This document shows positions 1,299-61,420 of a stretch of DNA of 64,000 nt, piece after piece. Each line of letters opens with the position of its first letter. Positions within the stretch are counted from its first letter, which is position 1. The translations under genes were made by a program, and so were the position numbers. The notes beneath the pieces were generated by a model. It was not told the origin of the DNA, did no database searches, and was given only the letters and a program-made list of their open reading frames with translations. Source of the DNA: Sphaerodactylus townsendi (Eukaryota); contig NC_059430.1 in assembly GCF_021028975.2 (NCBI RefSeq), positions 104,904,001-104,968,000 on the forward strand. The letters are read 5' to 3'.

Positions 1299-1524
1299 GA
1301 TGACTCTGGCGGTCCCTTCCATCTCTGAGATTAAATTAATATTTTAATAAAAGCAAAATCCACAATAGAAAAAGGCCAAAGAATAAAAAGAGATTGACAA
1401 CATCTACACTGAGCCACAAGGAGGAATATGGAATATGCAAACAATCAATGAACGAACATAGTCATTACACCAATATGCAGATGACAGTTATCTCCATCTT
1501 GTACTTTTGGCTGACACAAGGGAG

Positions 1525-1733
1525 ACTTGGGTGCTGTGTGGTTTCCGGGCTGTATGGCCGTGTACTAGCAGCATTCTCTCCTGACGTTTCGCCTGCATCT
1601 GTGGCTGGCATCCACAGATGCAGGCGAAACGTCAGGAGAGAATGCTGCTAGAACACGGCCATACAGCCCGGAAACCACACAGCACCCAAGTGTGACTTAC
1701 GGCCGTGGAAAGCTCTCTCTCGGAGCCAATACA
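1525..1733. mobile_element. Penelope-like element terminus with inverted pseudo-LTR (80-bp hairpin)
   Basis: Arms 1525-1604 and 1612-1691 are reverse complements with 1 mismatch. CCACAGATGCAGGCGAAACGTCAGGAGAGAATGCTGCTAGAAC...CAGCCCGGAAA resembles squamate Penelope ends. ACAAGGG(G)AGACT flanks both sides. Confidence 0.75.
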
Positions 1734-1914
1734 AGGGGAGACTGGGTTTGCTAGTTAGCTCTCAGAACATAGGAATTGCCCTCTGAAGCTAAAACCCCTC
1801 CCCATCTAAATCTGCTCACTTTTTAAGATTTCCAGAAGCTTCACTCTGTGTGCAGCTGCCTAAGGAGATGAGGTGAGGTTACCTAAAACTCTCTTTTATG
1901 GTGTCTTATCTTGT

Positions 1915-2350
1915 GAATGGCATTCCCTTCCCACAACAATTGTCCCCATTAATGGAATTCCTTTGTCATACAGATTCACCTGATTGTAATAATTCCTTCT
2001 CCACATCAATTCACCTGATGAAAAGTATCCCAGCCCCATACATACTCAGTTAACAGAAAGAAAGAAATCCCCACACCAATCTGCCTTATCCATGGAAGCC
2101 CTTCACACAAGTTTGCCTCACTGAAGGAATTTCTTTCCCACACCAATATGCCTCATGCATGGAATTTTCTCTCCAAACAAATTCACCTAGCCGAAGGAAC
2201 TCCACCCCCATACAAACGTCTTTTGCTATGAAAACCCTTTGTGGTAGCCATAAGTCAGCTGTGATTTGCCACCATAAAACAAACCAACCTCTCCCTGCAC
2301 CAGTTTTCATTTTCAATAGAATTCCCTCTCCGCACCAGTCTGTTTTCAGC
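1915..2350. repeat. Degenerate ~34-36-bp minisatellite
   Basis: A recurrent unit like GGAATTCC-T-CC-CAC-C-AATTCACCT starts near 1922, 1956, 1992, 2027, 2127, 2161 and 2196. Confidence 0.5.
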
Positions 2351-3899
2351 ATCAGGTGAAATTATTCTTTTTTGCCATGGGACCAAACATTGCTTTTGCC
2401 TTCTGCTGATATGAACTAAATCCTGTCTTGCTGATGGTGTTACTTTTGCTTGATTTCACTGGGCATTATGTACAGATGTACTGCTCACCACCCACCTGTA
2501 TTGCTCTTCTGTGTGCTCCCCCACCTTTATATGATACTGTTCTGAGTCTTTGAGTGTTATTATTGCTGGTATCCCCCCTTGTTTTGCGGCACTTTTGTGC
2601 TACCTGAACTTTTTAAATACAGTTTTTAGAAAACAGATGCAAAAATAGGCATCCAGTTTAGAAGCAATATTTCCTCTGAATTTGAATAGCATGGTTGGGG
2701 AAAGATTCCTACTTCATCTCGAATGGTGAAGAACCACGGACCAAAGTGGAACTTTCAAATCAAAGCAGTCTGATCATTAAATATGGTTACATTCTTAGTT
2801 TTGTTGTAAATGTGTTTACTTGTTTAAAATATTTATCTTATTAATGCAGGTATTCACTAGTGTTGTTAGAATATTTTTAAGTAACTTCTGCCCCCAGTGG
2901 GGAAAAAAAACCGTGGAAGGGTAGAAATGTTATCAATAAAATAAATATACTGTGCATTGTTCTAGGAACATTTTTGACTGTTCATTGGAGTAAAAGAGCA
3001 ATTGTTGGGGAATGGAAAACGGGCTGCATGTCCGAATCACACACACTCTTCAGTAAAAGCTTTGTCTGTCTCACAAAAGTCCCACCTCACTGAAGTGTAC
3101 CCTCTGCCTTATCTGCACACTATTGCGTGCTCCCACTGTGCCTTTTTTTAACTGCGTATATTGACTGAGTTGACAGTGAGGACACGAGTCTTGATACTGG
3201 TGATGAGGCATTTTCCCTTGCTGATTGTCCTCACTCCCATGTCCCGGCCGGGCCTTCCTTATCGTTCTTTCACACACATCTTTAAATATACTTAGCATGA
3301 ATAACACAGTTTGGTAATCATCTGATTATTCTTGGGAAATTGATTACTCTACAAGAGAAATGTAAGGCCTAGAAATGCTGTTGTGGCAAACCAATGTAGA
3401 GCTGAGAAATCCCACATACTTTAAGCAGGGACAAAGAAGGAACAGAAACCAAATGAAAGGGTAAGGCTGGGCAGGCAAGTTCCTCACCATAACAAGCACT
3501 CCTTCCTCATGTTTCCAGCCCATGCTCATCTCTCTTTGGATTGGAGTGGCCTCAGAAGAGAAAAGAAATTAGAAATATAGATGTAATGAAGATCTCAGGA
3601 ATTAAGAAGGGATCAAATGGGGACACTCGTGAGGGAGGAGTTTATATTGTCCCCATTTATATTGTCCCCAACTCTCACCACCCACCTGTATTGCCACCTG
3701 TTCTGACTGACTGATGCAATGGAGACTCATGTTCCTCCTAACTGCCCACTAATGCAGCTGCCATCTATGCTGCCCGCTCACCTGTCCCCTGGTCTCCCTT
3801 TCCCCCACCATTTTGATGCCCCCTCTTCCCCACAACTCTTTGCTGATCTGAGGGTAACGACAGGAGTAGTAATGAGATTGGTTCCTGCTCCCACTAGCC

Positions 3900-18900: not shown

Positions 18901-21900
18901 GGGAATCACAGCTGATCAAAAGGCCTCAAGGTTGCCCAATGACTTTGCAATGTGGAAAATTAGCTTGATTAAATTTGTCTCACTGCCATTTCTGGTCAAA
19001 TGGGTCCTGCAGATTTTACCATGTAAATCTGCAGAACCTGTGAACAAAGCTGATAATGTGATAAGTGCATGTATTATGCTTCCTCAAAGCAGTTTAGAGC
19101 AGTGGATGTGCTTCTCCCTTCTATCATTTATACCCATAACAACTCTTTCAGGTAGGCTAACATGAAAAACAACGTCTGGCTAAAGATCGTCTAGTGAGCT
19201 TTATGACTAAATAGGGACCAAAGTGACTCTCGCAATCATCTTCATGTCTGACAAGTGTAGTTTCTGCAGCCTCCTTTTTGTTTCCTCCCAGGTACATTCA
19301 TTCCAAGAACCGAGCCAACCTGTCCTACAAACTGGCTGTGAATCACTTGGCTGATCGTACCGCAGAGGAGCTGGTAGTGCTGAGAGGAAGGTTAAAAACC
19401 AGGGGTCCCAGTAACAGGTGGTCTTTCCCATCAAAAGGCTATGATAACCTCAGCCTGCCAGACAGCTTGGATTGGAGGCTTTCTGGTAAGCATGTGGACA
19501 CCTCAGATCAGGAGCTCAGCTGGATCCTACATTTCTTCAACAATAAAAAAATACTGTATTGCACAAAAAAGAAAAGCTTGGGCAGGGTTCATATGTGCCA
19601 GGAAACCTGGTTGCAACAGTCGGAGAAGGTAACACATGTAGCATCATTTCAGATAGCTTGTGGAGAGTCATGGAGGGTTATCTTTTGGTACGTGTTGTTG
19701 TTATTATTATTATTTATTAAACTTGATATACCGTCCACCCCCAAAGGGCTCTGGGCGGTGTATAACAGAACAACAACTAAAACAATAGTGAACAATAAAT
19801 AATTAATAAATAATTAAAAATCATAACTCAACTCAATATAAGATAGCAGCATTCCAAACCCAATAAAAATGATACTGATGATGGCGCCTGATCCCAAGGC
19901 CAGGCAGGGACAGACAATACCGAAAAAATGTCACATTGGTAATGCCAATGATGGTACGGCACACAACACGGGGGCATCCAATCCGCGGCTGGCCTCCCCA
20001 AAAGCCAGCCAGAAACAAGCCAGTATGCACAAAGCAAAGAAAAGAATTAGCCTTTTTTCCCCTTCTGCCATGCTAATTTTCGGTTGCATTGAGTTTTTCT
20101 TTGTCTGTGTGAGGGTGAGATCCATCACTTGCAGTTTTAAAACCCCTACTCTTGTAGTTCTGCCATGGTATTCCTTTGCATGCGTACACTAAACAGGAAG
20201 GCCAGTTCACTTGGATAAAAATGTCCTGCCTGGGCAACTGATTTGGTTTAATTTGTAGAAAAGGGCAGCTGAAGCTTTTCATAGCATGGAGATAAGATGT
20301 ATCGTCTAGTAAACAATATTCCATTGAGCCATGATTAAAGGGACAGGACATTTGTCTGTTACGTTTGCATGTTAGCTTACAAATAAGATGCCTCTGGCTC
20401 TTTAACGTCCAAGTTCCTAGTTTGATACAAATATATAATTTTGCTCCTGTGATCATTTGCACAGTTGGTGAACTGCATTGCTGAATGCTTTTAAAAATTT
20501 GATTGTGACACTGGCGTGTTGACACATTTCCTTACTTCACTCTGGTCACCAATGAAGGTGCTGTGACCCCTGTCAAGGACCAGGCTGTATGTGGGTCCTG
20601 CTGGAGTTTTGCTGCCACTGGTACACTGGAGGGGGCACTCTTCCTGAAGGTGAGTGCCCAGGGGCTTGAAAGCAAAAAGAGCCATTTAGACACCAGAGCA
20701 CTTATCAGAAATTGTAGTATTACGTGTTTTCAGGGGGAGGGGTGAACATTTTCAAGCCAACTTCTTACAGGGAAGCTGGTGAACATGTTCCCTTCAGACA
20801 GCACACAGGGGACCAGTCTAGTGGTCTGTCAAATCCAGTATCCACTTTCTGTGGAAGACACATAAGTCAGAGACAGAGAGGCTAAACCTATATAGTTTGG
20901 CCTATAGTTGGTCCTATAGTTACCCCCTAGCAATTAGCATTCATAGCTACACTACCCTCAAGCATGGGGGTTCCAGTTAGTCTTTATGGCTAATCACAAG
21001 TTGCAGATGTTTTCTCTACAAACCTCTTTTAAAGCCATATTACGCAAGCAGCCAACCTGGCACACTGTAGCAGTGAGTTCCACATAAGGTTGCAAATTCT
21101 AGGTTGTGAAATTCCAGAGATATTGTGTGTGGGGGGAGTGAGGCTGGGAAGAGGAGAGGTCTTGGTATAATGTCATAGAGTTCACCTTCCAACCAGTAAT
21201 TTTCTCCAGGGTAACTGATCTCTGTAGTCTATAGATCCGTGGTGGCGAACCTTTGGCACTCCAGATGTCATGGACTACAATTCCCATCAGCCCCTGCCAG
21301 CATGGCCAATTGGCTATGCTGGCAGGGGCTGATGGGAATTGTAGTCCATAACATCTGGAGTGCCAATGGTTCGCCGTCACTGCTATAGATCAATTGAAAT
21401 GCCAAAAGTCTCCAGAGGTTGGCAACTGTTCTTCCACATTTCATTGTGCATTGTGGTGAAAAAAATTTTGGGGGATCTGAAATGATCAACTGCATTTTTC
21501 TATGTAACTTCCAAGTTAAGACAAGCACTTGTGTCCTGATGTGACATCTAGTTTGAGCCTGAGTTACAGCATTATGGATGAAAGAGAAATATGGATGTGT
21601 GCGTATACATCCATGTTAGACATAACTTTATAGAACATCCCCCACCCACAGCTCTCTTTTTTTTACACTGAAAAACCACATACCCTGGCCTATACATTTG
21701 GAAACGAGGCTCTAACCCCACTCCCAACCCCCACCCCCATGGGGGGCTACACAGTGGAATCCTTCCTTGCCAAAAATATCTCTGCACATACAAAACTAAC
21801 AAGGCAAAGAAAAGACTATAAGTTCCTGGAGTGGTCTCTATTTTTCACTCTACAAAGGAGCTTTTCACTTCCAATCCTGCCTCTATTCACACACACCCTG

Positions 21901-27469: not shown

Positions 27470-27701
27470 TCCTAACCAATCATATCCCCCACCCTGCAAA
27501 ATGGGAGCGGGGTGTTTCTTTCTTTCCTTCCTTCCGCTTGCTTTCCCGCGGTTTCAGCAAACAAGGTCACCCTTGCGAGCGAGAAAAGCCCAGGCAACTA
27601 CATTTCCCATGAGCACTTTCAACGCGTTTTTAAAAAGAGCCAATCGGAATCCACGTTACTTGACGTGGCTATAAAAGGTCAGTCGCGCTCCGCGCTCTTT
27701 C
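27470..27701 (+). promoter_or_regulatory. CpG-rich Pol II promoter: CCAAT boxes, ZNF143/SBS motif, CRE-like site, TATA box, TCT/5'TOP initiator
   Basis: CCAAT at ~27476 and ~27640; AACTACATTTCCCATGAGCAC at ~27596-27616; TGACGTGG at 27661; TATAAAAG at 27670-27677; pyrimidine initiator CTCTTTCTTTCC at 27695-27706, ~27-31 nt downstream; donor GAG|GTTAGT after 27731. Confidence 0.85.
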
Positions 27702-29408
27702 TTTCCGGTTGCTTCGTCGAGTTGTGCGGAGGTTAGTAAACAAAAGGGGGAAAAAAAGGGGGTTTTCAAATCCATCGCCATCCTTTTCTTCCCGGGGGGC
27801 TAGGGCTGTAGTGAGTGTCGATAGCCTCAACTGAGAGTCCTTATTTTGTATTTAATAATAAAATATAATCAAAAGAGGGACTGATCGGCTGACGAGGTCT
27901 AGTCGACTGGCTGGAAGGATTCTTCAGGTCCTTGTGGGTGGGGGTGGGCAGAGGAAGCGAATGTCCTTTAACCTGGTCGTTTTGGGACTCTGGAACAGCG
28001 TTGTGTTTTTTTGTTGCATTTCTCATTTTAAAACCTGGCTCTTATTTTTGTTAGTATAACCTTGAAAGAGGAAGCCAGACCGGCTGTGCTGCAGCTGTAG
28101 AAGCAGGAGGTCTTCCCAGAGGTGGGATTCGGACTGGTTGGGCAGAACTGATTCCTAATGTTTTGTTTAGTTCGCCCAACCGGTTGTTAAATGGTGTGTC
28201 CCGCCTAAACTCTAGGGGCGCCCCCGCCAATCTTGCGGGCCGCCGCGCCTCCCTCGGCTCTGCTCCTCCACTTTTTATATTATCCTTTTGCTCAACTGCC
28301 CCGCCCCCTTCGCCCAGCTCCTTCCCCCACCCTTTGCTGTATCGCTAGGATGCTTTTTGGGCAAAGAGACTGGAACTCCTGTAATACTCAGGTCAAAAGG
28401 AAAGGCTAGGTAAGGGCAGGGGCTTCACAGAGGCTTCACTTTCTCGCTGGGCATGCGCATAGGCTTGGCACGTGCTCATTTGGGTTGCATCAGGGCTCTG
28501 TGCACAGGTAGCCTTTTGGGGCAGGGAAATCTCCCAGGTGCAAGAAGTGGAAGATCCAGGAACCTTGCGCCGCCACGCCTCCAGCTCACTCCGGAGGTCT
28601 GGAAACAGCCGTGCAGAGGGAGCCCTCGCTTGCTTTCTCCAACAGGCAAGAATCTATTTGACCCAGATTGGGGGGAAAGCTCTGCATGTCTGCCCAGCAT
28701 CCCTTACTCACAAGTAATTGCTACCTGGCAAAGTGCCTCTCCTGCCAATCTTGTAGAGCTGTTGAGGAAAGCAATGAGGAAGCATATTCATAACTACCAT
28801 TTGCACATGGGGTTGTGGGTAGGAAGGCCAAAATGGAAATAAAAATCAGTTTAAATCTAAAAATTTAGGCTCATACTAATAGATGCATTTGATACTGACA
28901 TATGTTATAGGTATTTTATATTACTGTTATTTGTTTAATGGAATATATACATACATTCTTAAAGTATGGTTTGTATTTGAAGTTGAAATCCTTGGTGCAT
29001 GCTAAGCTCTACTCTAGTTAGCCATCCCCCCCCCCCCAGATCCCGATTTAGATCCCCCCAGGCCTTTTAAATATCATTATAGGGTTCCCTTATGTCTCCC
29101 TAAGGAGGAGGAAGAATGCAGTGAGGGGGGAGAGAGTTCCAAGACCTCACCCAGCAACCCATAGAGCTTTTCTGGAGGTAGCAGTTCATTCATTCCTTCA
29201 CTCATCTCCCCCCCCTCCCCCTTTACTCCATTCACACGTGAAAAAGCTTTGCCAAGGATGCTGGTCTCCATTGTGGATTGCTATTTCCTCTGCAAAGAGT
29301 GTGTAATGGCGGGGGGCGGGGGGGGGTCTGCATCAGAATCCACCAAGATATTCCATAGTGTCCAGCAGAAACAGCGCTGTCATCACTGTGTGTTTTGAGT
29401 GTCTAGTG

Positions 29409-29497
29409 CAGGGGTGTCCCACTCTGGTTAGCCATGCCAGAAGGGGCTGGTGGGAATTGTAGTCATGAACATCTGAAGCACCAGAGTTGAAACCCTG
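29409..29497. mobile_element. Small hAT MITE nested in the large hAT
   Basis: CAGGGG...ACCCTG termini. TSD GTCTAGTG (29401-29408, 29498-29505). Confidence 0.8.
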
Positions 29498-30735
29498 GTC
29501 TAGTGTTGTGGTGTGTGTGCACGCCTCCTCCCTCTTCTCCCCACCAGTGGTGTCCTGCCTTCCTCCTCCTCCCTGCACACATAGCCAGAACCAGCACAAT
29601 GCCCTTTGAAAGCCTGTTCTCCCAGCTCCCAAACCCAGTTCTTGACCAAAACATGCCCGACTCTGACAGGCAACATGCAATGGAGGAAAGGTCGAGTAAT
29701 GTTTTACGTCTCTTCGCTTCTCAATGGTGATGATTAATAGTGATAACTAAGAATGATGGTGTTATGTGGGCTGGTGATGGGAGTGATAACAATGTGTGTT
29801 AAAAATTGCCGTGTGTGTTTTTAAATAAAATGGAAAACTATTTCTGTAGCATTGTATGGGTAAAGTCACAATCAGGCTGATGGGGCAGCATTTTTAGCTA
29901 GATTGGGGGGTGATCTCTTAGAGGTTTTATTTTAGATGCATTTTTACATCTATCTTTATTTCTTGCTGAAATAACAAATCCATCTGTTTGTAACATGCGC
30001 TTTCCTTTGGGCATCTGTGTTACATCACTGTTGTTCTTATCCTCCCTGACCCCACTCCCATTTTAAATCAAAACAAATGTGTTTTACCCTTTGAATACAG
30101 AGAGCTCCTTGTGATTTTTACACCTTCCACATTTAACTGAATCTTTTTTTGTGCAGGTGAAGGTCACTCTGATATTATCTTTTCCACTTGTACATCTCAT
30201 TGAGCTAACAAGCCAGAGTCATTTTTCCTCTGGGTGGAAGACTTGTGTTTTCTCTTTCCTGCAGATAGTTGTTTTTAAGCAGATTTGTCTGAAGTGTTAT
30301 TTTAAACACCTCTAAAATTATTTACCTGTCAATAACATGTATGCAAATGTTACTCTTAGGTTTCCCGAGGCTTCGATTGTCTGAGGCCGCTGCACTGAAA
30401 GCACCAGAGCTCGGATATATTTAATCAAAAACTGTTTTTATCACGAGACAAAAGGTTTGTCGTACACATTATTCTATCGTATTTAATATGCATAGCTTAT
30501 GCCATTTATTTATTTCAGCAAGAAATTTTCATTTAATGTCGATAAAATGAAGAAAATGTATGTTCTGACTGATGTTTATCAATAGTATTAGCACAGTGCT
30601 TTGTTTATAAAAGTTTATGATATGTCCACACGTGGATAGAGCCAGTAAAAATGTTCAAATATATAAGCACATCTCTGCTGCTCTATAATATATTAAAATA
30701 GAACTATTTTTATTTTTGTAGTGTCCCTTAAAAAA

Positions 30736-32895
30736 ATGAAAAGGCAACAGAGTTGGACAGATTTTTTCAATAAGAAACCAAAATCAGATTCTGTGGTATC
30801 AGAATGGGCCTTGGATGGTTCAAGACAGGCACAAGCACAGCCACTCCAATATGGAGAAAGCAGCACGCCGGTTATTAAAATAGAAAACGATGACGACTCC
30901 AACATTGAAGATAATCTTCCTGAATGCTGGACAGTGCAACAATATAACAAGTTTAAGGAAAAATATGACGGACTGGTAATTTTAAACAAAAAGTTAGGTT
31001 GCGATTATTGTGCAAAATGTGACTGGAAAATAAGACAGAAAAGTGTTCACGTGTCAAAAGAATGGAAATATATTCAGATTGAGGCATCAGGGAGAAATAA
31101 GGGGGTGCGACAAGCTTCCCTAAGGAAAAAAATGAAAGAGCATTTCGCATCAAGAGCTCATAACATTTGTGCAGAGAACTTAAAACAACGTGAGCAGGAT
31201 TCAGTAACGGAAGCAATGCATACGATGAATGAAACATATTTAATGACCGAAGAATATTTAAGTACTTGTAGAGTATTTAATACAGTTTACAGCCTGGCAA
31301 AAAGATGTCAGCCATTTTCAGACATAGAAGATGAGATAGAAGTTCAAATTAAAAATGGATTAGATATGGGAATAGAATTACATTCCCATGAAGCTGCTGA
31401 GAAAGTAGTTGATTTCATTGCAAAGGAAACTAGAAAAGAAATATTTCATAAGATTATTGAAAATAATTTGAAAATATGTTTGGTTATTGACGAAGCTTCG
31501 GTGATATCCTGCAAACCGGTTATTGTGCTTTTCTTAAAAGTTGAGGATTCAGCTGCATCGCCAACAATTTTCGTTGAGCTGATTGAATTGGAAAGCCAAG
31601 ATGCAGAGACAATATGTTCTTCAGTTATGGAAAGTTTAAATAATGTTGGGCTTACTAAGAACTACCTAGAACAAAATTTAATAGGCTTTTGCTCCGATGG
31701 CGCCAGCGTCATGCTTGGGAGAAAATCTGGAGTGAGCACTAGGATTGCAAAAGAGTTTCCAAACATCGTAATATGGCACTGTTTAAACCACCGGCTCCCG
31801 CTTATTTTAGATGATTCGATAAAGGATATTAAGCAAGTAAATCATTTCAAAATATTTATTAGTAAGATCTATTCTACTTTTCATCAATCCAGTAAGAGCC
31901 AAATTGAACTTTCCCAAATATCTGAACAACTTGGAATTGAAATTACAAAGATTGGTAGAGTTTTGGGACCAAAATGGGCTGCCTGTAGTTTAAGGTCCAC
32001 CCTAGCTGTGTGGCAGGCTTATCCAGCACTACATCACTATTTTTCTTCAAACAAAAAGTTCTTCGGTATGGCTGCCCGTCTTGAAAATACATATTTTCTA
32101 AGTGATTTGGCATTAATGATTGATATTTTAAACGAAATTTCTCTTCTGACAAATGCATTGCAAGTGAGAAATATAGACCTAATAAAGGCTGAAAAACTTG
32201 TGATAAGATCTATTAAAGCATTTCAAATGCTTGCAAAGGAAAAGGGTCCGTATGAAAAAAAAGTTGGTGAATTAATTACTTCAGAAGCCTTCAAAAGTAT
32301 AAAATTTGTAGAAAATCATCAATTCGTCGGGCTTCCTCGGGAAAAACTGTTAGAAAACATCGTAACGAATTTGGTAAAAAGACTAATGGATTGCGAACAT
32401 CGGAATAAGTTACAATTTCTCAATTTTTTGGAGCCAGATCACTGGAATATTGAAAAAGTAGTAGTTCCATGGAAAGCAGCTGAAGAGCAATTGCTTGTGT
32501 TTAATGATATCTTTAATTACCAAATTGATATTAATGATTATCGAGATTTCGTGGAAAACGTCCTGAAAAATCAACAGAATTATGCAATTCCTGAAAATGT
32601 TCAAAGAGCTAAAAATATTGTCAGAACCATTGCTGTAAGCTCACCAGAAGTGGAAAGAGTTTTTTCAAAGATGAACATAATATGTTCAGAGACAAGAAGC
32701 CGCCTGCCTGTTTCTAACATATCAAACACAATGACGATTAGTCTACTTGGCCTGCCTCTAAAGGAATGGGATCCTACTCCTACAGTGAAAATCTGGTTAA
32801 CAATAAATCACACAGCCAGTGATGCTCAGATAAAAGCAGAGAATATTGCAAGTGGGGACGCCCATCAAGAAGCAATATGGAAATATCTCAAATAA
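30736..32895 (+). CDS. hAT transposase, KIAA1586-like, 719 aa
   Basis: Uninterrupted ORF. First ATG at 30736, after the acceptor TTTTTGTAG (ends 30721). N-terminal zinc finger (CDYC...H..SRAH); D of IDEAS (~31489); D of SDGASVM (~31696); CLNH (CxxH); E of SSPEVERVFS (~32653); C-terminal hAT dimerization region. Confidence 0.9.
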   Translation: MKRQQSWTDFFNKKPKSDSVVSEWALDGSRQAQAQPLQYGESSTPVIKIENDDDSNIEDNLPECWTVQQYNKFKEKYDGLVILNKKLGCDYCAKCDWKIRQKSVHVSKEWKYIQIEASGRNKGVRQASLRKKMKEHFASRAHNICAENLKQREQDSVTEAMHTMNETYLMTEEYLSTCRVFNTVYSLAKRCQPFSDIEDEIEVQIKNGLDMGIELHSHEAAEKVVDFIAKETRKEIFHKIIENNLKICLVIDEASVISCKPVIVLFLKVEDSAASPTIFVELIELESQDAETICSSVMESLNNVGLTKNYLEQNLIGFCSDGASVMLGRKSGVSTRIAKEFPNIVIWHCLNHRLPLILDDSIKDIKQVNHFKIFISKIYSTFHQSSKSQIELSQISEQLGIEITKIGRVLGPKWAACSLRSTLAVWQAYPALHHYFSSNKKFFGMAARLENTYFLSDLALMIDILNEISLLTNALQVRNIDLIKAEKLVIRSIKAFQMLAKEKGPYEKKVGELITSEAFKSIKFVENHQFVGLPREKLLENIVTNLVKRLMDCEHRNKLQFLNFLEPDHWNIEKVVVPWKAAEEQLLVFNDIFNYQIDINDYRDFVENVLKNQQNYAIPENVQRAKNIVRTIAVSSPEVERVFSKMNIICSETRSRLPVSNISNTMTISLLGLPLKEWDPTPTVKIWLTINHTASDAQIKAENIASGDAHQEAIWKYLK

Positions 32896-32996
32896 GTTTT
32901 TATCAGGTATTTAATATTTTTTCATTAATATTTTAAAACTCTTATAACATATTCTTGTTTTGTGTACCTCTTATTGTACTTATTTAAGTATTAACT

Positions 32997-33083
32997 CATA
33001 GGTGTCAAACTCGTGGCCCTCCAGATGTTATGGACTACCGTTCCCATTATCCCTGCCAGCATGATGCGAGTTTGACACCTATG
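32997..33083. mobile_element. Small hAT MITE (87 bp) nested in the 3' end of the large hAT
   Basis: Perfect 17-bp TIR CATAGGTGTCAAACTCG. TSD TATTAACT (32989-32996, 33084-33091). Confidence 0.88.
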
Positions 33084-35118
33084 TATTAACTGTATGAAAT
33101 AATAAACTATCTTTCGGTATATCATTTTTTTTTATATTTAAAACAGTCATTAGGGCAACAAAGCTGTTGTTAAATTATTTGAATCCCATCACTGGGTCTT
33201 CCCCCTTCGTGCAAGCATGTTGCAGCCCCACTGCCTGGTGAGGGCAGGTTTTCTTCAGGCTGTTTAGGAATCCTAGTTTAGCAGCCTAAACTTCTGAAGT
33301 CTAGTACCTTGTCACTTAAGGTTGCTGAGCTTTGAACCCTGTGCTTCTGTATGCAAGCCCAGCACATGATCTGCTCCAGAAAAGTCTACCTTTTCGTTCT
33401 TCTCTTCCTCTTCTGTGTGTGCGATTATCTTTTAAGACCTTAAAAGAATTCAGAATGAATCATTTTTGCTTTCGCTTTATCCCTTTTATGGTTGAAAGTG
33501 GAGTTTTCTATCCATAAAAATTAATATATTATAACATATTGTACCCTGTTCTTGCCCCAATAAGAGCATGAAATTGGAGGTGATCTTTGTAGCAATCTCC
33601 TATTTTTGTCAGTCTCTCTTTAGTCTCTTCCTGGTTGGCTGCATTTTTTCTGTTGCTTTGCTATGTCCAACAACGCGTTGTACTTTTATTTTTTCCCTTT
33701 CAGATTTTGAGTTTTAAGTAGTCCAGGACGCACCCTCCACACCCCTCTATTCCCACTACTTCCTCACCACCGGATCTCCTGTTCAATTTGTGGTTTCACC
33801 TTCCTTCAAGACTTCCTCCCGTCTATCCGGACCACAAAGTACTCTCTGATTTCTTAAAGGTAACGTTCAAAGTTCTCAAGTTTGTTCTGATTAAATGCTT
33901 TAATAGCAGAAGAGTTTGAAGCTTAAAGTTTTTATTTTGTACTTACATCAGTATTTCTGTTGTTTCTTCTGTTTGTTTTGCTTTCCTTGTTTCCGCTTTC
34001 CGCTATACCCCTTGGCTTTGTTTTGCTTGTTTCCGCGACAGTGCTTGTCACGCACACCTTAGGGTTGCCTCTTCAATCTGCACTGTTTTCTTTTTGCTAC
34101 CCCAATTTGGGTTTTCGCTTTGAGATATTTTTGTGCTGGTTCCAGGGCATACGGCTCCATTGGCCTCTATTCATCCACCGCACTGTGCTGCTGTCGTCCT
34201 CTGCTGTCGTCCTTTCCTGACCAGCAAGCACTCCAAGTGAATCTGCTGTGTCTTCTCTTGTTTATACAAGAGTTGACGGGTCTGAGAAAGTTCTCTGACC
34301 CTGATGCAGGCAGATGAAAGTGGATTCTTTCTCTCCTGCTCAGGAGAGATGTTGCCCGTCTTCCCCCCACACTGGAAGTCCCCCTTTGTAGCAATCTCCT
34401 CATTCTTGCTGCTGCCTGTGCTGTTTAAGCCAGTGTAGCAGAATGGTTAGTACTGGACTAAATCCCCAGCAAATATGCAGCAGGATAGAGTGGCTCAGGT
34501 AGCTTGTGGGCAGGATAGGTTGTACTTTTTCAGGCAGTGGGCAAATAGCATTTTCCCAGCCTTTTTAGATATGCTTCACTTTTCTCCCCAGTGGGCATGC
34601 AGTGTAGCTTACAGCATTGCTTTCCTCCACTACACTGTATCTTCAGAACAACAACCTTGTGAGGTGGGTTGGGTTGAGAGGCAGGCCAAGGTTCTCCAAC
34701 AAGTTTCCATGGTCAAGCAAGGATCTGAATCTGCATTTCCTGATCCTAGTCTGGCACCAAGAGCTAGACTTAAGCATTGATACGCTAATGTTGTATTTAA
34801 AGCTTTACTGCGTGGGGGAAGGGGACAATGACAAACAACCATTTTGCCTTTTCAGGGATCTACAACTTTATTCTGTTTGATGTGTAGACAGGGCTAGGGA
34901 GATTATGGTTCAGAGCTCCCTGTGTGGCTGCAGAACATGCTGGCTGAATTCATTTTTGACTTTTACACAACAATCCTGGAAGGTAGATTAAAACAAGTGC
35001 TCTGCTGGCATACATCAACAACTCTACCATCTTTTTTCCAGGAAAATGTAGATATTCAGGTCTAGACGCTTATGCAAAATAATTCCCTACTCTCAAGATC
35101 TTAATGCTGTACTTAATG

Positions 35119-35258
35119 CTGGCCCTGTCGAAGCTGCATCTGTCTCTTGTGTGGCTGATGTGGTCAAAAAGGTGCCAAAAGTAACTTTCTTCCTTGACGG
35201 TCGCTGTTCAGTTGGTCTCCAGGTAACTGTCCAGCAACATTTTTAGGGAGGCACAACT
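35119..35258 (+). ncRNA. SNORA16: H/ACA snoRNA SNORA16
   Basis: Matches recalled SNORA16 blocks TCGAAGCTGCA, TGTGGTCAAAAAGG, TTCCTTGACGGTCGC and GCAACATTTT. H box AAAGTA at 35178-35183, ACA at 35253-35255. Confidence 0.88.
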
Positions 35259-35823
35259 TCTCTTTGTTGAGGTCGTGCCTGGTGTCAACCACATCCAGGC
35301 TTCCAAGTGGGGAGGGGTTGTTAGGGACTGAGTGGTCATAGTTGGTGTTGGAGTGCCTGTGCTTGGGATGGGACGGTGGGATATTCTGCATGGACCAGGA
35401 GCTACAGTGGTCCCTGATTTGCTCATGGTGGCTGCTATTCTGTTTCTTGGTTCCCCTCTTTTCCTGAAGCAAGGAGAATTCTTGCTTTTCCACCAAGTTC
35501 TCAAAGCATGCCTACTACCAAACAGCCTAAGAGGCATCTTTGTGTCTGCAGAAAACATTGATTCTCTCCATTACAGGAGGGTACTTAGCTCAGAACTTCC
35601 CAAAATGTTCTGGTTCTCAAAAAGCTTTGTGGCATCCTTCTCTAATATAAGACATGGGAGTTACTGTTATGCAATAGCCTTGCCTTCTATCTCTCCCAAC
35701 AGGTGAAAGAATAATCTGCCTGTGAGTTGCAAGAAACTGCCTTTGTACCATGGCCTGTTTGGAGCTTAGGTAAAAGAGATGAGAACACTAACATGTCTCC
35801 TTGCTGTGTTTCAGGCAAATGGA

Positions 35824-35954
35824 GTGCATGTTAACCAAGAGCTGTGGCTTAGCAAATAGCCACTGGGTCTCCAACAACATGCGAGAGCATGGCGGGGGGA
35901 CTTTGACTCTTCAGGCTTGGTTATCTGGGGATGTCACTCGACCCTCCTATATTG
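35824..35954 (+). ncRNA. SNORA44: H/ACA snoRNA SNORA44
   Basis: GCATGTT..CCAAG.GCTGTGGCT...ATAGCCA...TCTCCAAC..CATGC hairpin. H box AGAGCA at 35884-35889; GACTTTGAC in hairpin 2; terminal ATA box at 35949-35951. Confidence 0.87.
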
Positions 35955-36734
35955 CTTTACTCGGGAAGGAATTTGTTTCTTTGTAGACTTTTAAAAACTC
36001 CCTTGATCTATCTTCCTGTGCTCATAGAGATTATCAGAAGTTACCTCTTGAGGAAACTTCAGAGTGGAACTGCCTTACAGAAGGTAGCATACCTGTTGGT
36101 GCTTTTCCCTCTTGGAGATCATGAGGGCTTGAGACTTGGCTTTGTAAAACTGATTGCAGCAAATGTGCCATACAAAAGCAGCTTTGCTTGATGTCCTTGA
36201 GGAGCCTGAGCGGTTTTGGTATAGTAGAAGTGTGATTGTTATCCATGTTCCTTGCAAGGTGCGCAGCCACACAATCCCCATATTGCTGCTGCACAGAAAA
36301 AAATGTTGCCGCTCATTGAGCGCTTAATCTTGGGTGGGTGTAAAGGGACACCCAGCGCGGGGGGGGGGGGGGGGCCCTCCCTGGCAGTCAGCGAATTTCA
36401 TCAATCTAGGCCGGGGGGGGGTGGTTGGCAAACTGGCTCCGGAGCCACATGAGACTCTTGACATTTTTGCAGTGGCTTTTTCCTGGAGGCTGAGAGGCAG
36501 CTGGCAATTGGGGGTGGGATAGAGAGTGGAGCAAACAAGACAAGCAAATAGGACAGCAGGTGTTTGGGGACAGGGTGGAGAGTCAGAAACTGCCTACAGC
36601 AAGTGATTGCAAGCAAGTGCTGGAAAAACACACCTCCTTGTCTTTGGAAGAGAGAGGCACTCTTTGGAAGAGGCAGACAATGGCAAACTGCCTCTGAACA
36701 TCTCTGGCCCTGCAAACCAGCTGCAACTTCCTGA

Positions 36735-36915
36735 TGCCTGAAGTTGTTCAGCTGTGGGATACACTGCCTTGGAGTGCGGTGGAGCCGCCTCCTTTGGAGG
36801 TTTTTAAACAGAGGGTGGATGGCCATATGTCAGCAGTGCTTTGGTTGTGTATTCCTGTATGGCAGTGGATTGAACTTGATGGCCCTTGTGGTCTCTCCCA
36901 ACTCAAGATTCTAAT
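36735..36915 (+). mobile_element. CR1 3' end fragment
   Basis: VVQLWDTLP-SAVEPPPLEVFKQRVDGHMS resembles the CR1 ORF2 C-terminus. Tail CCCTTGTGGTCTCTCCCAACTC..ATTCT. Confidence 0.7.
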
Positions 36916-37587
36916 TTAAGGGCACCCCCACTACCAAATGATGAAATGTCCCTTAAAGGCTCAATTATTTATGTGTCTAATCCAGATGCATGCCATGCAT
37001 AAATAACAGTGCTTTTACATTTTTTGTCTATTTCCGGACCAGCATCTGTCTGGAGCTTCGGGCTATATATAAAGCAACTGTGCCACGATGTCCAAGAGAA
37101 AGTGTGAAGGAACCAGAAGATCTAAGAAACAGAAAGCTTGCTCTAGTAAGTGGCAAAAATGGTAATTGCGTTATTTAAACAGCATCTCAACCAATGCTGT
37201 CATTTGGATTCTATCACCAAATTACAAAGCCTGAGGGGAGGTGGTATTTTGAGAATACTCCTAAAACTCCACTTGAGCAAAAATTAGAGTAGAGCAAGAG
37301 GCCCGAAAAAGTCCAGTGCTGATATGGTAAAAGGTCTAATCGAGAATTTTATTCTCGTTAAAATTAATGCTTCAATGCATTCTATCCCAGAGATTAATTC
37401 ACGCTTGGCCAAATACGTGAACGTGCCTGAAGCTATTCTACAGATGGAATACAGGAATCCCATTGCAGCAGAAATAATTCCAAGCAAGGTGTTTTGCAAG
37501 GTACAGTTTAGATCTGCAGTTTTGTGTAGGGTTTTTTCCCCCATTTTCTGAGATGAAGAGATCTGGACCACTAAGATGGGCAGTTGG

Positions 37588-37708
37588 ATCCCTCCCTATC
37601 CCTTTCCCATTAGATCTGAATACCGATCTGATGGTCAAAAAGGAGGGAAAGTAAAATGCAAGCTGGTCTTGACCTCTTTATGGGGAGTGAGGCTGGCTTG
37701 AAACAACT
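37588..37708 (+). ncRNA. SNORA61: H/ACA snoRNA SNORA61
   Basis: CCTCC..ATCCCTTTCCCAT..GATCTGAA...TGGTC..AAAAGGAGG hairpin. H box AAAGTA at 37648-37653, ACA at 37703-37705. Confidence 0.87.
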
Positions 37709-38887
37709 TCTCTGGACCCTGATGGATCAGCATTGCTGATAACTATCTTCACAGTTTCAGAAGACCTTTCACTGAAACCAATAAGTTGTGGGGGGAAATA
37801 GATGTTGCTACACAAATATACTTGTACCTCCTGTTTGACAAGACATTCTTTGCTCCGCTACTTCTCAAACTGCACTGAACCTCAGCTGAGTCTGAATGGC
37901 ACTACGGCTGAACCACATGAGTAGGAGCCAACATGGTGCAGTGGTTAGAGAGTTAGACTAGGGCTGGTTAAATGTAGATTTGAAACTCTGCCATAGAAGC
38001 TCTTTTGGGTGACCATGGGCCATTAACATCCCCAGTCTAACAAACTAAGTGCTGTGAAGGTAAAAAGAATCCGGGGATTTCCTCATGGAAAAGGATAAAA
38101 TGAAAATGTGGTTGGTGAGGCAGCAGTGAGAATTTCCTGTGACCTGTATGGCAAGTCTATTTCTGTAATACCAATTTCCCTAAAACTGTGCCCCCATATT
38201 AGCAATCCCATTGCGTAACTTTTCTCATGTACCCCCTAACACTCTGGCACATGCCCCAGGTTGGGAACCACTGTTTTAGAGGAACAAAATGCTAACTCCT
38301 GTGGCTCTACTCCACTCTTTGGGCATGCCCAGTTCTAACCGTTGCCTGGTATATTTTGCTCCCACCTTTCCTTGCAGTTCCTCCCTCCCCATACAGTGCT
38401 GTGAGATAGGTCCGATATAGACACAGTGAGTTGGGTATCTGAGCTCATCACTGTTTGTCTATTCGTCTTGCTATTATCACAGGCTGTTTGTGGAATCTGA
38501 CTATGATCTGGGAATCTAGAGTTCAAATCCCTGTTGTGCCATGATCTTAAAGTCAGTTGCACTCAGCCTATCCTACTTCATGGGGTTGTTGGGAGGATAT
38601 AATAGGGGGAGGAGTTTGTAAACTGCTTTGTGATCCCCATTGAGCCAAAAGATTCCTTGAGTGTTTGTTTGGTGACAAGCTTCTTTTCTCCTTTCTAGCA
38701 GAGGCCTGTTTCCCCCACTTGGACTTTATTATGTCTCAGCTGACCACTTCAGCAAAGTAAGACAAAGCTCCCAGCAATGTTTTGTTAGCTTGTCTGTGGG
38801 TTAATCTGGATTGGACAGCATGTCAACAGCTGCTCTGTCCATATTGAAAACACCTGGATGGCGTTCAGACACAAAGCCACCTCTGCC

Positions 38888-38956
38888 CTTGTCTGTGATG
38901 ACTTGTTTCTTATGGTGACTGCTGGATGAATCCTGCGGATATGGGGCTGAGACAAG
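38888..38956 (+). ncRNA. SNORD99: C/D snoRNA SNORD99
   Basis: Terminal stem CTTGTC/GACAAG; box C GTGATGA at 38895-38901; box D CTGA at 38947-38950. The guide CTGCGGATATGGG is complementary to 28S rRNA CCCAUAUCCGCAG. Confidence 0.9.
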
Positions 38957-40347
38957 GCAGTGGGTGAGGGGAGTTCCCAAAGGGGACTTTTGGCAAGGTT
39001 GCTCTTTAAAGGTTGCAAATGACATGTTGGGAAAATGGCACACGAAGCAGTATATGAAAGGTGATTGCTTGGCAGAGATTTATGAGCTCCTCAGATTACT
39101 TTGTAGGGTTTAATTTTGCAGTGCAGTTTTCCAGGTGACAGGAGAAGAATAACAGGATGGGGCAGTAATTGTTCCTTACCCATCCAGTAAGCACTGCTAG
39201 CCGACATATGATTTAAACCAGGGTTGGTGCTGTAAGAGCCCTGCTAGATAAGACCAGTGGTGCATTTAGTCCGGCATCTAGTCTGCTTCACACATTGGCC
39301 AACTGGTTCCCCTGTAGGGCAACAGTTGGAACATAAAGGCCAAGGCCGTTCCCTGAAGTTACTTCTTAGTCCTGGTATTCAGAGAATAACTGGCTCTGAA
39401 CTGGAGATCCCTTTTAGCCATCTTGACAACCATGAATCTAATTCACTTTTAAACCATCCAGTATGGTACTCTGTATCCTCTGCTTGGAAATTTGCATAGT
39501 GTTTAGCCTGGAAGTCTTTCAGAATTGACCACAATAAGCCATTAATAATTTAGACCATGGTAAATGCTGCAGGAGAATAATGTACTGTTGAGATGGTGCT
39601 TTAGTGCTGTTACATTCTGATCTATGGAGTACAGATAATGGCAAATGGTGACAAAATTAATACATGCTTGTTTTTCTCTAGGATTTCAGAGGGTCTTCAG
39701 GAGTCCGGGCTGTCCACGAAGAACCTTCAGGGGTGCTATGTACAGTTTTTACAATTGATTTTAGAGCTTATGCAAGGAATATGAAATTAAAGGATTTTCA
39801 CTGTTTTCCTGTCTGCATTGTTTATCTTGCTACCTCCAACAACACTTGAGTATAAATGTGTATATCTTAATAATATGTGTAAGCAGCTCTGAGGCTGGAA
39901 AGAACAGAGCAGTAAATTTAATACAATAAAAATAATAAATAAAAAGTCCCGTTCTCATGCAATCTGAAAATTTGATCCTAGAATATCAGCTGTCTGGCAG
40001 TAGGACTGGCTTTCTTTCTATACAAAAATCCCAACAGGCCCCTTTCTGGAGCTAAGTGGTCTCACAATTTTCTATTTTAAGAGAAATTTTAACCATCTTA
40101 CGAAGCAGACTGCTCATGGGGGAGCTTGGAATAAGGGGAATAGGTGTGTGATGTTTTGATCTGTTCTGTTAAATCCGGGGTCCGCAGCCTTTTTGAGTGT
40201 GTGGGCACCTTTGGAATTTTGACACAGGGTGGTGTGCGCCACCCCAAAATGGAAGCTGCAGGAGATGGAGTCAAATCCAGAGGAAGTCCAAGTGCAGGGG
40301 TGAAGAGGGGTAATTTTAAAAATACACTGGGAAAGTGGATGAGAGCA

Positions 40348-42692: not shown

Positions 42693-43272
42693 CAGTGGTG
42701 GGATCCAAAAATTTTAGTAACAGGTTCCCATGGTGGTGGGATTCAAACAGTGGCGTAGCGCCAATGGGGCTGGGCGGGGCACGGTGGGGGCATGGCCAGG
42801 CATTTCAGGGGCGAGGTATTAATAATTTCTGTTACTGTAAAAAACTCTTACTGTAAAAAAAAAGTTCCTAATTTCCAGCTGGTATCTTTCTGCCCATAAT
42901 TTAAACTCATTATAGCAAGTCCTATTGTCTACTGCCAACAGAAACTACTACTACTCCTCTAATTGACTGCCTGTCAAATACTTTCAAATACTTGATTTTG
43001 TTTCTAGAAATCAAAAAAAGGATACTTTCCTTAAACAAGGAACTTTACCATATTTCTGAAACATGTTTTTAAAACAGCCCAACAGGGAGAATTATCCCGT
43101 TTTCTACCTTTGCTAACCAGCTACATAGGAAACAACAGGACTTTATGATTTTTGGACCTAATGGAATTTCTAACGGAAAAGCAGACCCAATTAGTAACCC
43201 CCTCTCGGCACGCACAAATAATTAGTAACCCACTCTCGGGAACTGGTGAGAACCTACTGGATCCCACCTCTG
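42693..43272. mobile_element. Non-autonomous hAT (580 bp) with TIRs like the large element's
   Basis: TIRs CAGTGGTGGGATCC / GGATCCCACCTCTG. Perfect TSD GGGCTGGC (42685-42692, 43273-43280). Confidence 0.88.
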
Positions 43273-58500: not shown

Positions 58501-61420
58501 AAATAACTGGACATGTACAAATCTCATCAGGAGGAATTCTTCCAATTCTGGATGCTGAATTTCAAGATGGGTGTAGACAAATCAGAAAGGGTTTGGAGGA
58601 AGCCAGGAAAGGACTGAAAACATCCTCTGCGGAGACATTGTTGGGGATGTTTAGCTAGAACAGGGGTAGGGAACCTTTAACACTCAAAGAGCCATTTGGA
58701 CCCGTTTTCCACGGGAAAAGAAAACACTTGGAGCCACAAATAATTTTTGACATTTAAAATAAAGATAACGCTATATATATTGCGGGGGTTTTCTACCTTT
58801 TACTCCGCTCATTCTGAGAAGCGCATGGATGCGTCCACCCTGCTGCCTGCAGGGCGGGCAAGGATGGGGCCAGCGGCTCAGCCTTGCCGGCCGCCGGGAA
58901 AGCGCCCACCCCGCTCCAACAGGGCGGGTGAGAGGGGAAGCCCGTGGCACGGCCCAGCCAACCGCAGGCAGTTGGTGCGCCTGCCCTGCTGCCTGCAGGG
59001 CGGGCAAGGATGGGGCCGGTGGCTCTGCTCATGGAGCCGCAGTGCAAGGGCAGAAGAGCCGCATGCGGCTCTCGAGCCGCAGGTTCCCTACCCTTGAGCT
59101 AGAAGATGAGAAGATTGAGGAGACATGATTACCCTCATCAAATAGCTGAAGGGCTTTCCCAGGGAAGAGGACAAAAATGTGTTCTCTGATGCCGTGGACA
59201 GCAAAATGAGATTCAGTGGGTATTCAGTTACAGGAGGGAAGATTTTGGTTGAACATCAAGAGAAAATTCATAATCGTACAAGTAGTTTAACCATGGAACC
59301 AGTTACCTTGGGAGACGTGTTAGGTTCTCCCTCACTGGAGATCTTCAGGCAGAGGCTGGACAGTCATCTGTGGAGATTTTCTGGCTATTGATTCCCCCAT
59401 CCCACCCCACCCCCACACTTGAGGGAGGGAGGGAATTAGATGGCCCCTTCCAGCTCCAGGTTCTCTGGAATCATTTTTTTTAAAAAAATTTATTTTTCCA
59501 TATATAAAAGAAAGGAATAATACAGAAAAAAAGGGAAGGGGAAAGGGGGGGATACAATTGGAACAATAAGAGAATCTGGGTTAATAGCTTCTTTCACTGA
59601 AAAAACCTCAGTTACATTCAAAATAAAAAAGAAGCTCAATACATGTTGAACAACTTCTACATATACTCTTGCAAATAATTCATTTAGAATTATTTGTGAT
59701 CATCTATATATAATAAAAAGTTATATATATTAAGGCGCGCCTCTGATGGAGGTGGGGTGTGTGGCAGCAGCAGGCCCGGGGTGCTCCTGGCCTGGTGCCG
59801 GCTGCTGCCATGCTGCTGCCCGCCCCCCCAATCAGAGGCACATGCCTGCTCCCGGCCTCTGATAGAGGTGGGGTGGTGGCAGCAGCCGGCCCTGGTCTGG
59901 AGCCTGCCGGGCTCTCCTGGCCTGGCGTCGGCAGCTGCCGGGCCGCTCTCCCACCTCTATCAGTGACTGTGCCTGCTCTGGGAGGGGCAGGAACCGTTGT
60001 GATGCTTACACAGGGGACTACCTTTACTTTTGTCTAAAAAAGAAAATAAAGTGGATTTTGTGGTCAGAGTGCCAGACCCAAGTCTGAATCCTCACTCTGC
60101 CATGGAAGCTTATTGGGCGACCTTGGGTCAGTCATTCTCTGCTATGAGCATAAAATAGAGGAGATAAAAATAATGTAGAGTCCACTTTGGTTCCTCACTG
60201 GGGAGAAAGGCAGGGTATAAATGAAGCAACTGAACAGAGAAAAACAAAACATATTTTAAACTGCTGTGAACTCACTATAAAGCAAAGCAAAAAATAACCG
60301 ATATGGCACAGTAGACAAGAGAGCTGAAATTAGATTGGGGAGTAGGGCAGAGTTCAAATCCCCACTCAGCCGTGATGTTGGCCAGTCAGGTGACTTTGGA
60401 CTGGTCGGCTTAACCTACCTCCGGAGGCTCCTGCAAAGATAAATAAACAGGCAGAACTACATATGCTTAGGGTTGGTTTCCAGGAGACAAGGGTCACCAG
60501 GTGGGGACACAAACCCAACCTATGAACTCTGTCAGTTAAACATTACTGGCACGTTCTCTGTTTTTACCCACATTGCTTCCATTCTAATTTGGATGATGGC
60601 CTCATAAAGAAGGAGTTGCAGCCTTTCCCCCCTAAGAGGAAACGCTCCAGGGAAGTAATTATTTGGCCCTTTGTGAATGACTCGGGGACATAGAAATCAA
60701 CCCTTTATCTAGCGCAGGGGTCTGCAACCTGCGGCTCTCCAGATGTTCATGGACTACAATTCCTATCAGCCCCTGCCTACAATTCCCAGGGACTACAATT
60801 CCCAATTGACCATGCTGGCAGGGGCTGATGGGATTTGTAGTCCATGAACATCTGGAGAGCCACAGGTTGCAGACCCCTGATCTAGCCCCTTGAAGAAATA
60901 GCAGCATAAAAAATGAATGCAGGATGGCTACTTTTATGAAGCAGACTCAACTGAGAACAGAAATCCTTAACCAGGTGTTCCTTTCTTGTGATACAGATCT
61001 GTGACTCGCTCATATTACCGCAACTCAGCAGGTGCAGTTCTGATGTTTGACTTGACCAATCGAGCATCTTTTGAGAGCATCAAGAAGTGGCACCAGGAAG
61101 TTATGGAGACCGTCAAGCCTTATCATGTGGTCTTTGTGCTGGTTGGCCATAAAAGTGACCTGAAGGATGAATGTAAGGTTGAGCAAAAAGAGGCTGAGAA
61201 GCTGGCATCTTCACTGGGAGCAAAGTACATAGAAACATCCGCTAAGACCAGCCAGAACGTGGAGGAGGCTTTTCAGATATTGACCTTAGCCATCTATGAA
61301 GCACTGGAAAGTGGGAAGATGAGACCAAATGAACAATGGGATGGAATAAAATGTAAGTTACCACCTGAGGCACAGCTTAAGATACAGGAAGAGAGGAGAC
61401 AGAAGAAATGCTCATGCTAG
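55581..61420 (+). CDS. RAB39/RAB42-family GTPase (Rab-39B-like, rab42b-like); exons 55581-55801 and 60997-61420, 214 aa
   Basis: MAADSIWHYQFRIIMLGDSTVGKS, QTVGVDF, WDTAGQERFR|SVTRSYYRN, GHKSD, ETSAK and C-terminal CSC. Same phase-2 intron position as RAB42. Confidence 0.9.
58661..59096. mobile_element. Non-autonomous hAT-Charlie element inserted in a CR1 fragment (~58540-59460)
   Basis: TIR CAGGGGTAGGGAACCT / AGGTTCCCTACCCTTG. Perfect TSD AGCTAGAA (58653-58660, 59097-59104). CpG-rich interior. Confidence 0.88.
60715..60879. mobile_element. Palindromic hAT MITE
   Basis: TIR CAGGGGTCTGCAACCTG; TSD ATCTAGCG/ATCTAGCC. Same internal ACTACAATTCC core as 21237-21382. Confidence 0.85.

Follow-up and report, generated by a model that had tools for sequence, protein, structure and literature searches.

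A single-copy hAT element with an intact transposase gene, probably within intron 1 of SNHG12, in the gecko Sphaerodactylus townsendi

We analysed a window of 64,000 nucleotides from the gecko Sphaerodactylus townsendi (NCBI RefSeq assembly GCF_021028975.2, contig NC_059430.1, positions 104,904,001 to 104,968,000 of the forward strand; positions below count from the first letter of this window). The window holds a complete hAT element with an intact transposase gene, followed on the same strand by the small nucleolar RNAs (snoRNAs) of SNHG12, the host gene in whose first intron the element probably lies. An earlier note on this DNA had proposed that the element is old-looking and that its open reading frame (ORF) may be kept by the host as a lineage-specific gene. 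The account that we put forward, with about even confidence, is that of a late, fixed and probably immobile single copy, still open since it is not very old; we hold adoption by the host to be less likely.

Results

The element and its ends

The element is defined by its ends and target-site duplication, and its ends and ORF are homologous to snake, frog and Logan-contig elements. Its parts outside the protein motifs are as follows (strand in brackets where there is one).

28109-28116: left target-site duplication, 8 bp, GGTCTTCC, the same letters as 33195-33202
28117-33194 (+): hAT element, complete, 5,078 bp
28117-28130 (+): 5' terminal inverted repeat CAGAGGTGGGATTC; the family form is CAGTGGTGGGATTC, and T4A is derived in the gecko
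28131-28200 (+): 5' subterminal region; its CCGGTTC-type repeats are decayed, with one 9-nt repeat lost and CTGG and CTGA in place of two CCGG cores
28200-28409 (+): G+C-rich leader, likely the element's own promoter and non-coding first exon; similar blocks precede the snake copies
30704-30721 (+): polypyrimidine tract and AG splice acceptor, 14 nt upstream of the ATG, with the leader open in frame
30736-32895 (+): intact transposase ORF, 719 aa, from the ATG at 30736 to the TAA at 32895; 2,160 nt
33101-33106 (+): AATAAA, a putative polyadenylation signal within the element, 3' of the ORF
33181-33194 (-): 3' terminal inverted repeat, CAGTGATGGGATTC when read on the minus strand, the same as the 3' end of L006
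33195-33202: right target-site duplication GGTCTTCC, a perfect match to the left one

The element ends, CAGAGGTGGGATTC and CAGTGATGGGATTC, are complementary at 12 of 14 positions and mismatched at two, as the earlier note had read them for a hAT element at 28117-33194, and the GGTCTTCC duplication is perfect on both sides. A scan of the window for the end pattern gave 5 matches where 0.65 would be expected by chance. The ends, together with about 50 nt of subterminal sequence, can be aligned with the snake, frog and Logan elements, and 8-bp duplications occur in relatives too (CCTATATG in L006, GTTTCCAC in a snake miniature inverted-repeat transposable element, MITE). L006, a Logan contig of SRR32665174 with 30% G+C, carries a pristine relative of 2,943 bp at 671-3613, with the perfect duplication CCTATATG, an intact 716-aa ORF, clean CCGGTTC subterminal repeats, the 5' end CAGTGGTGGGATTC and the 3' end CAGTGATGGGATTC. 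Because the G/A mismatch at end position 6 is present in L006 as well, this asymmetry of the gecko ends is an inherited family trait and not wear; the only derived change in the gecko ends is T4A, at the 5' end.

Directly after the G+C-rich leader stands a putative GTAAGG donor (28410). We considered whether the 2.6-kb 5' region could be a captured host promoter and rejected this, as the leaders in the snake copies can be aligned with its start and about 5-9 copy equivalents, judged by depth, share the region. No further nested elements with 8-bp duplications were found in this 2.6-kb region, and no tandem repeats of note were found. When the element and its flanks were compared by BLAST with the remaining window, MITE matches alone were returned.

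The transposase and its predicted fold

The 719 codons of the ORF are free of stops and frameshifts. The encoded protein (30736-32892) has a single match in public assemblies, CM037619.2 of GCA_021028975.2. Alignment with the family places the following motifs.

30991-31161 (+): zinc-finger region, C89, C92 ... H136, H142; the first three residues are invariant, and H142 is conserved to at least 90%
31489-31491 (+): catalytic D252, motif IDEAS
31696-31698 (+): catalytic D321, motif SDGAS
31780-31800 (+): C349-x2-H352 followed by RLPL (RLQL in the family); C349 and H352 are invariant
32644-32667 (+): active-site helix SSPEVERVFS with catalytic E640; A637P, A639V and G642V are changed beside it

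D252, D321 and E640 fall in invariant or near-invariant columns and are all kept in the gecko, and the family alignment bears out the earlier claim that a 2160-nt open frame retains the zinc finger, D-D-E and CxxH. The same holds for its observation that HRLPL and SSPEVERVFS depart from hAT patterns. In the family motif HRLQL the Q is found in 20 of 26 sequences, and the gecko has P (Q355P, beside CxxH); in SSAEAERGFS the residues A (23/26), A (21/26) and G (24/26) are P, V and V in the gecko. Altogether, 7 of 138 near-invariant residues are changed in the gecko protein; fresh copies have 0-2 such changes, true KIAA1586 has 4-8 and decayed snake copies have 13.

Pfam recognised only PF05699 (hAT dimerisation) in the gecko protein, at 13.9 bits and below the cut-off of 21.4, while several relatives carry a precomputed PF05699. 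A sequence search of solved structures with the gecko protein found nothing. Using AlphaFold, a model of the transposase was built on 27 relatives (mean predicted local distance difference test score, pLDDT, 78.5), and a Foldseek comparison with the PDB returned Hermes for all of the top ten matches (E 5.5e-9 to 5.0e-8). The model predicts a Hermes-like fold, with an RNase-H-like D-D-E core and an all-helical insertion domain. Hermes, the house fly hAT transposase (PDB 6DWW, 4D1Q, 2BW3), is the best structural match, with E 5.5e-9, a probability of 1.0 and a target-normalised template-modelling score of 0.64-0.67. Hermes and the gecko element have in common the 8-bp target duplication and short ends; however, the two proteins are only about 15% identical in sequence, and Hermes belongs to a different hAT subgroup.

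Family membership and horizontal spread

Homologues of the gecko protein are plentiful and mostly annotated "KIAA1586-like", and its identity to mammalian KIAA1586 is 43-47% over the full length. In a tree of 49 proteins, true KIAA1586 forms a short-branched clade (mammals, Rhineura, Microcaecilia) apart from a transposon clade, each of them starred, and the gecko protein lies in the transposon clade together with snakes, a skink, Pogona and Australian frogs. The gecko element thus belongs to a low-copy hAT family that is related to KIAA1586 and has a catalytic domain of the FAM200/ZBED5 type. KIAA1586 resembles the gecko protein in this domain (PF27073 on relatives) and in its zinc finger and D-D-E columns; the gecko copy differs in that it is no orthologue, sits at another locus, keeps its ends and target duplication and is known only from Sphaerodactylus. 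The link to KIAA1586 drawn in the earlier note consequently stands as homology but not as orthology, the gecko protein lying outside the true KIAA1586 clade. A literature search that combined KIAA1586 with transposase returned no paper.

At the nucleotide level, the gecko ORF is 81-82% identical to the copies from Pantherophis (L003) and Mixophyes (L005), and the terminal 50 nt are homologous. Synonymous divergence (dS) between the snake and frog copies is 0.34, and the proteins of the frogs Pseudophryne and Mixophyes are 89-91% identical to that of the agamid Pogona. Given the deep divergence of the hosts, these values mean that horizontal transfer brought the family to squamates and frogs, and they indicate that this transfer was recent.

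Copy number and sharing between organisms

Exact-match contigs over the ORF have a depth of 66-81, compared with 87 for a contig that spans the flank. As the exact ORF contigs are at single-copy depth, there is no near-identical second copy, which disposes of one way in which the earlier proposal could have failed. The paralogous contigs among the matches listed for the ORF show about 9-12% divergence, with indels or deletions.

The samples in which the insertion was followed bear the coded organism labels A, B and C, with B about 1.5-2.4% diverged from A. Two samples of organism A read across the left junction with 0 differences. Organism B has a contig that crosses it too, covering 27938-28419 (482 nt) with 8 differences and 4 gap letters. 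Because A and B share this junction, the insertion predates their split; it is neither private nor visibly polymorphic. Related pieces are present in organism C. No orthologue was found in Eublepharis, the sphaerodactylid Euleptes, Gekko or Heteronotia, all annotated, and a search for orthologous or paralogous gecko protein fragments with two shorter query pieces found no gecko sequence.

At window position 32792 the reference has T (Ile686), whereas G (Ser) stands in every contig from organism B and from the two further samples of this species. Either the allele with T is private, or the reference assembly is in error here.

Age of the copy

Between A and B, 34 of 1,440 positions differ in the non-coding pieces, with gaps in every piece, compared with 13 of 847 and no gaps in the ORF pieces seen; the substitutions do not differ significantly between the two (chi-square about 1.8). 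The minimum age of the insertion corresponds to about 0.8-1.2% neutral divergence on the A lineage, and the true age is probably a few percent at most. For an unselected ORF, the chance of staying open is 0.014-0.23 at a divergence of 0.0085-0.012 and 0.0003-0.02 at 2.3%.

Three observations point to a greater age. In the 5' subterminal repeats the gecko differs at 8 of 38 positions and has lost 9 nt, part of this change being CpG decay, whereas L005 and L006 differ at 3 of 47 positions despite dS > 2; the 3' subterminal motif has 5 changes in the gecko. The 7 altered residues among the 138 near-invariant ones are the third sign. The two end mismatches were rejected as a further sign, one of them being the family trait seen in L006. 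The "old-looking" element of the earlier note therefore keeps its age through the decayed subterminal repeats, but not through its mismatched ends.

Great age is in turn opposed by the perfect target duplication, by a short gecko branch in the 3' untranslated region (UTR; 0.02-0.06, a noisy value from 88-94 columns) and by the state of the second of two hAT-type MITEs nested in the element, which has perfect ends and a perfect duplication.

29409-29497: nested hAT-type MITE 1, flanked by GTCTAGTG at 29401-29408 and 29498-29505; ends diverged; depth about 2e5
32997-33083: nested hAT-type MITE 2, flanked by TATTAACT at 32989-32996 and 33084-33091; ends match at 17 of 17 positions

Both are later insertions with duplications of their own, as had been noticed from the sequence before, down to the diverged ends of MITE 1. 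The frog element L005 lacks MITE 2, and gecko positions 32992 and 33083 are adjacent there. The two MITEs belong to a hugely abundant family (summed contig depth 1e5-1e6 in those bins), so that two insertions within 5 kb need not have taken long.

Selection on the ORF

We obtained the ratio of non-synonymous to synonymous divergence (dN/dS) from Nei-Gojobori distances split by three-taxon comparisons. On the gecko branch, dS is 0.19-0.25 and dN 0.06-0.09, giving a dN/dS of 0.30-0.39 (bootstrap about 0.2-0.5); the branches of Thamnophis, Pantherophis, Lerista and Mixophyes give 0.27-0.54. Since plain transposon lineages yield the same values, the gecko ratio is the family's own signal, and dN/dS at the level of the family cannot separate a mobile past from adoption by a host.

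Changes within the gecko copy itself can be read against its paralogues. At nearly all of the 14 best-supported ORF positions that differ from the paralogous contigs, the paralogues carry the letter of the other species, and nearly all 14 changes are therefore derived in the gecko copy. Eight of the derived changes are non-synonymous and 6 synonymous, a division indistinguishable from neutral under realistic mutation bias (p = 0.06-0.27). These measures lend no support to the host purifying selection suggested by the earlier note: the ratio resembles that of plain copies and the 8:6 split fits neutrality.

The probable host gene SNHG12 and the transposon-borne acceptor

The surroundings of the element have the layout of a snoRNA host gene.

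27670-27731 (+): putative SNHG12 TATA box, oligopyrimidine start (about 27695) and short non-coding exon 1, read from the sequence; donor GTTAGT at 27732
33704-33859 (+): candidate SNHG12 exon 2, acceptor ttcag at its start, donor AAAG/gtaacg at its end
35117-38958 (+): SNORA16, SNORA44, SNORA61 and SNORD99, all above Rfam gathering scores; the SNHG12 snoRNA set

The snoRNAs stand in a row downstream of the element on the same strand. With exon 1 upstream and the candidate exon 2 and the snoRNAs downstream, the element would lie in intron 1 of SNHG12, in sense orientation. Exon 1 (35-37 nt) has no ATG, and a spliced transcript would therefore encode the plain transposase and no fusion protein. 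In every element examined, the gecko copy and four others from snake, frog and Logan data, a polypyrimidine tract and AG stand immediately upstream of the ATG, and the leader is open. Transcripts from the SNHG12 promoter could accordingly be spliced into the transposase exon and end at the AATAAA of the element, and the element in SNHG12 may be seen as a ready-made exon trap, one step short of possible domestication.

Among the runs that hold the stretch, none is on record as RNA. In one run of unrecorded kind, whose contigs total only 216 Mb, 64% of the words of 27600-33500 are present, an odd share for low-coverage DNA; this run may be RNA.

Probable capture of the same family in snakes

Fusions of SCAN and KRAB domains with the transposase are predicted in Pantherophis (P0002; P. 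guttatus L003:8001-14171), Micrurus (P0005) and Erythrolamprus (P0007). In these three snake families the SCAN and KRAB exons join exactly at the transposon acceptor (junction between ...VALNR and MKRRQ), and the fusion looks like a shared domesticated snake gene. The snake transposases are of the same family as the gecko copy, at 68-75% amino-acid and 82% nucleotide identity, and both have the same acceptor and open leader before the ATG and lie in sense orientation inside a host gene. They differ in what is upstream: the snakes have coding SCAN and KRAB exons fused in frame, in a gene common to three families, whereas the gecko has a non-coding exon of 35-37 nt in a snoRNA host gene and a splice that is predicted only.

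Other repeats in the window

The MITE family is palindromic and of hAT type, with the core CTCCAGATGTTATGGACTACAATTCCCATCAGCCCC, and has 4-5 copies in the 64-kb window, among them 29409-29497, 32997-33083, about 21241-21365 and about 60737-60863. A non-autonomous hAT element of 580 bp lies at 42693-43272. Its ends read CAGTGGTGGGATCC and CAGAGGTGGGATCC, its 8-bp duplication GGGCTGGC is perfect, and the ends alone relate it to the element studied here.

Summed contig depth reaches 2e5-6e5 at 33116-33312, with joints leading back from 33192-33199 to 33160-33166 and no matching copy elsewhere in the window. Abundant MITEs carrying the element's end were rejected as the source, since the window holds no such copy; AT-rich low-complexity contigs may be the likelier source, or else a tandem repeat derived from the hAT end.

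Discussion

The account to which we give about even credence runs as follows. Before two Sphaerodactylus lineages parted, the element would have entered intron 1 of SNHG12 in sense orientation, and it would now be fixed. It is probably no longer mobile, because a base of its 5' end and the subterminal binding repeats have changed, and its ORF is most likely whole because the insertion is only moderately old. The chance of an ORF surviving in this way (0.014-0.23 at the minimum age) is not rare, because there are several copies per family and many families. The 8:6 split of derived changes, the lack of an orthologue in Eublepharis, Euleptes, Gekko and Heteronotia and the retention of both ends and the target duplication do not tell this account apart from adoption by the host.

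Several points weigh against this account. There is no second young copy, and the paralogues listed are broken, with about 9-12% divergence, so that no recent burst can be seen. Changes in the 5' subterminal repeats (8/38 and a 9-nt deletion) go far beyond those in elements whose ORFs differ by dS > 2, and 7 of 138 near-invariant residues are altered against 0-2 in fresh copies. If these changes of ends and residues came after the insertion, its age would be at least 2% and the chance of an open ORF at most 0.02. Neither of the nested insertions and none of the element's extra length falls within the ORF, and in the pieces of organism B that were seen the ORF is free of indels while each non-coding piece has some.

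A different explanation is incipient or lineage-specific domestication, which we regard as possible but rather doubtful. Here a copy that has long been in intron 1 of SNHG12 and is no longer mobile would be kept open by the host, with the SNHG12 promoter and the element's own acceptor driving its expression. The constraint on the protein would have shifted, with the neighbourhood of the active site altered and D-D-E kept. In its favour, the copy is single and common to two organism labels, with decayed ends and an intact ORF, and the chance of an intact ORF is at most 0.02 if the neutral age is at least 2%. Conserved columns are changed about threefold less than average (7 of 138 against about 23 expected for a gecko branch length of 0.16), and with 7 deviations the protein resembles true KIAA1586 orthologues (4-8); three changes are clustered around E640, and Q355P lies beside CxxH. 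The family has moreover been captured in snakes via the same acceptor, by a mechanism that is described (10.1101/2020.05.07.082677). Set against domestication are a branch dN/dS no lower than in ordinary copies, derived changes (8 non-synonymous, 6 synonymous) that fit neutrality, and an A/B divergence of the ORF (13/847) not significantly different from that of the non-coding pieces (34/1440). There is also no orthologue in other annotated geckos, the sphaerodactylid Euleptes included, and the short 3' UTR branch (0.02-0.06) speaks against great age. No run that holds the stretch is on record as RNA, and ascertainment bias enters, the copy having been noticed for being intact. The domestication idea of the earlier note has survived the checks of copy number and sharing, but the host selection that it supposed remains conjectural.

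In its most specific form, which is more tentative still, SNHG12 would be bifunctional in Sphaerodactylus: its strong 5' terminal oligopyrimidine (5'TOP) promoter would drive a full-length, D-D-E-intact transposase through the transposon acceptor, and the host would keep the ORF. Host-transposase fusions are known to be born by alternative splicing, the capture route of Cosby et al. (10.1101/2020.05.07.082677). The first step of that route, insertion into a host gene with a transposon-borne acceptor upstream of the ORF, is matched in the gecko. Its second and third steps are a spliced transcript and selection, both hypothetical in the gecko, whose host gene is non-coding.

It is unlikely that the element is still an active autonomous one, able to excise and supplying transposase in trans to a few deletion derivatives, with its ends a working variant of its lineage. 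The intact ORF with D-D-E, CxxH, zinc finger and predicted Hermes-like fold would suit such an element, as would the perfect target duplication and a 3' end the same as that of its pristine relative; about 5-9 copy equivalents share its 5' region, and the related 580-bp non-autonomous element lies at 42693-43272. However, no young copies are seen, the exact contigs being single-copy and the listed paralogues about 9-12% diverged; the subterminal repeats are deleted or mutated and the residues flanking the catalytic E changed, and two organism labels alike have the insertion fixed at a single site. As for KIAA1586, a gene conserved in tetrapods, we give practically no credence to the copy being its orthologue in the gecko. 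Its best named homologues do carry the annotation KIAA1586-like, with an identity of 43-47% to the mammalian protein, but the tree, with its separate, short-branched KIAA1586 clade and the gecko in the starred transposon clade, and the anatomy, with ends, target duplication and a probable place in an SNHG12 intron, refute it.

What the locus means for the gecko depends on which of these accounts is true. If the ORF is not selected, it is an ordinary ageing hAT copy. If it is under host selection, it would be among the youngest known transposase captures, with ends and target duplication still in place; the promoter donor, a non-coding snoRNA host gene, would be unusual, and the first steps of domestication could be studied within a gecko genus. 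Were SNHG12 bifunctional, a non-coding housekeeping gene would have gained a protein product while the transposon ends are still present. Even as an ordinary copy, it would belong to a hAT family of some interest, one that has passed horizontally between frogs, agamids, snakes and geckos and that looks to have been captured independently in snakes as a SCAN-KRAB fusion.

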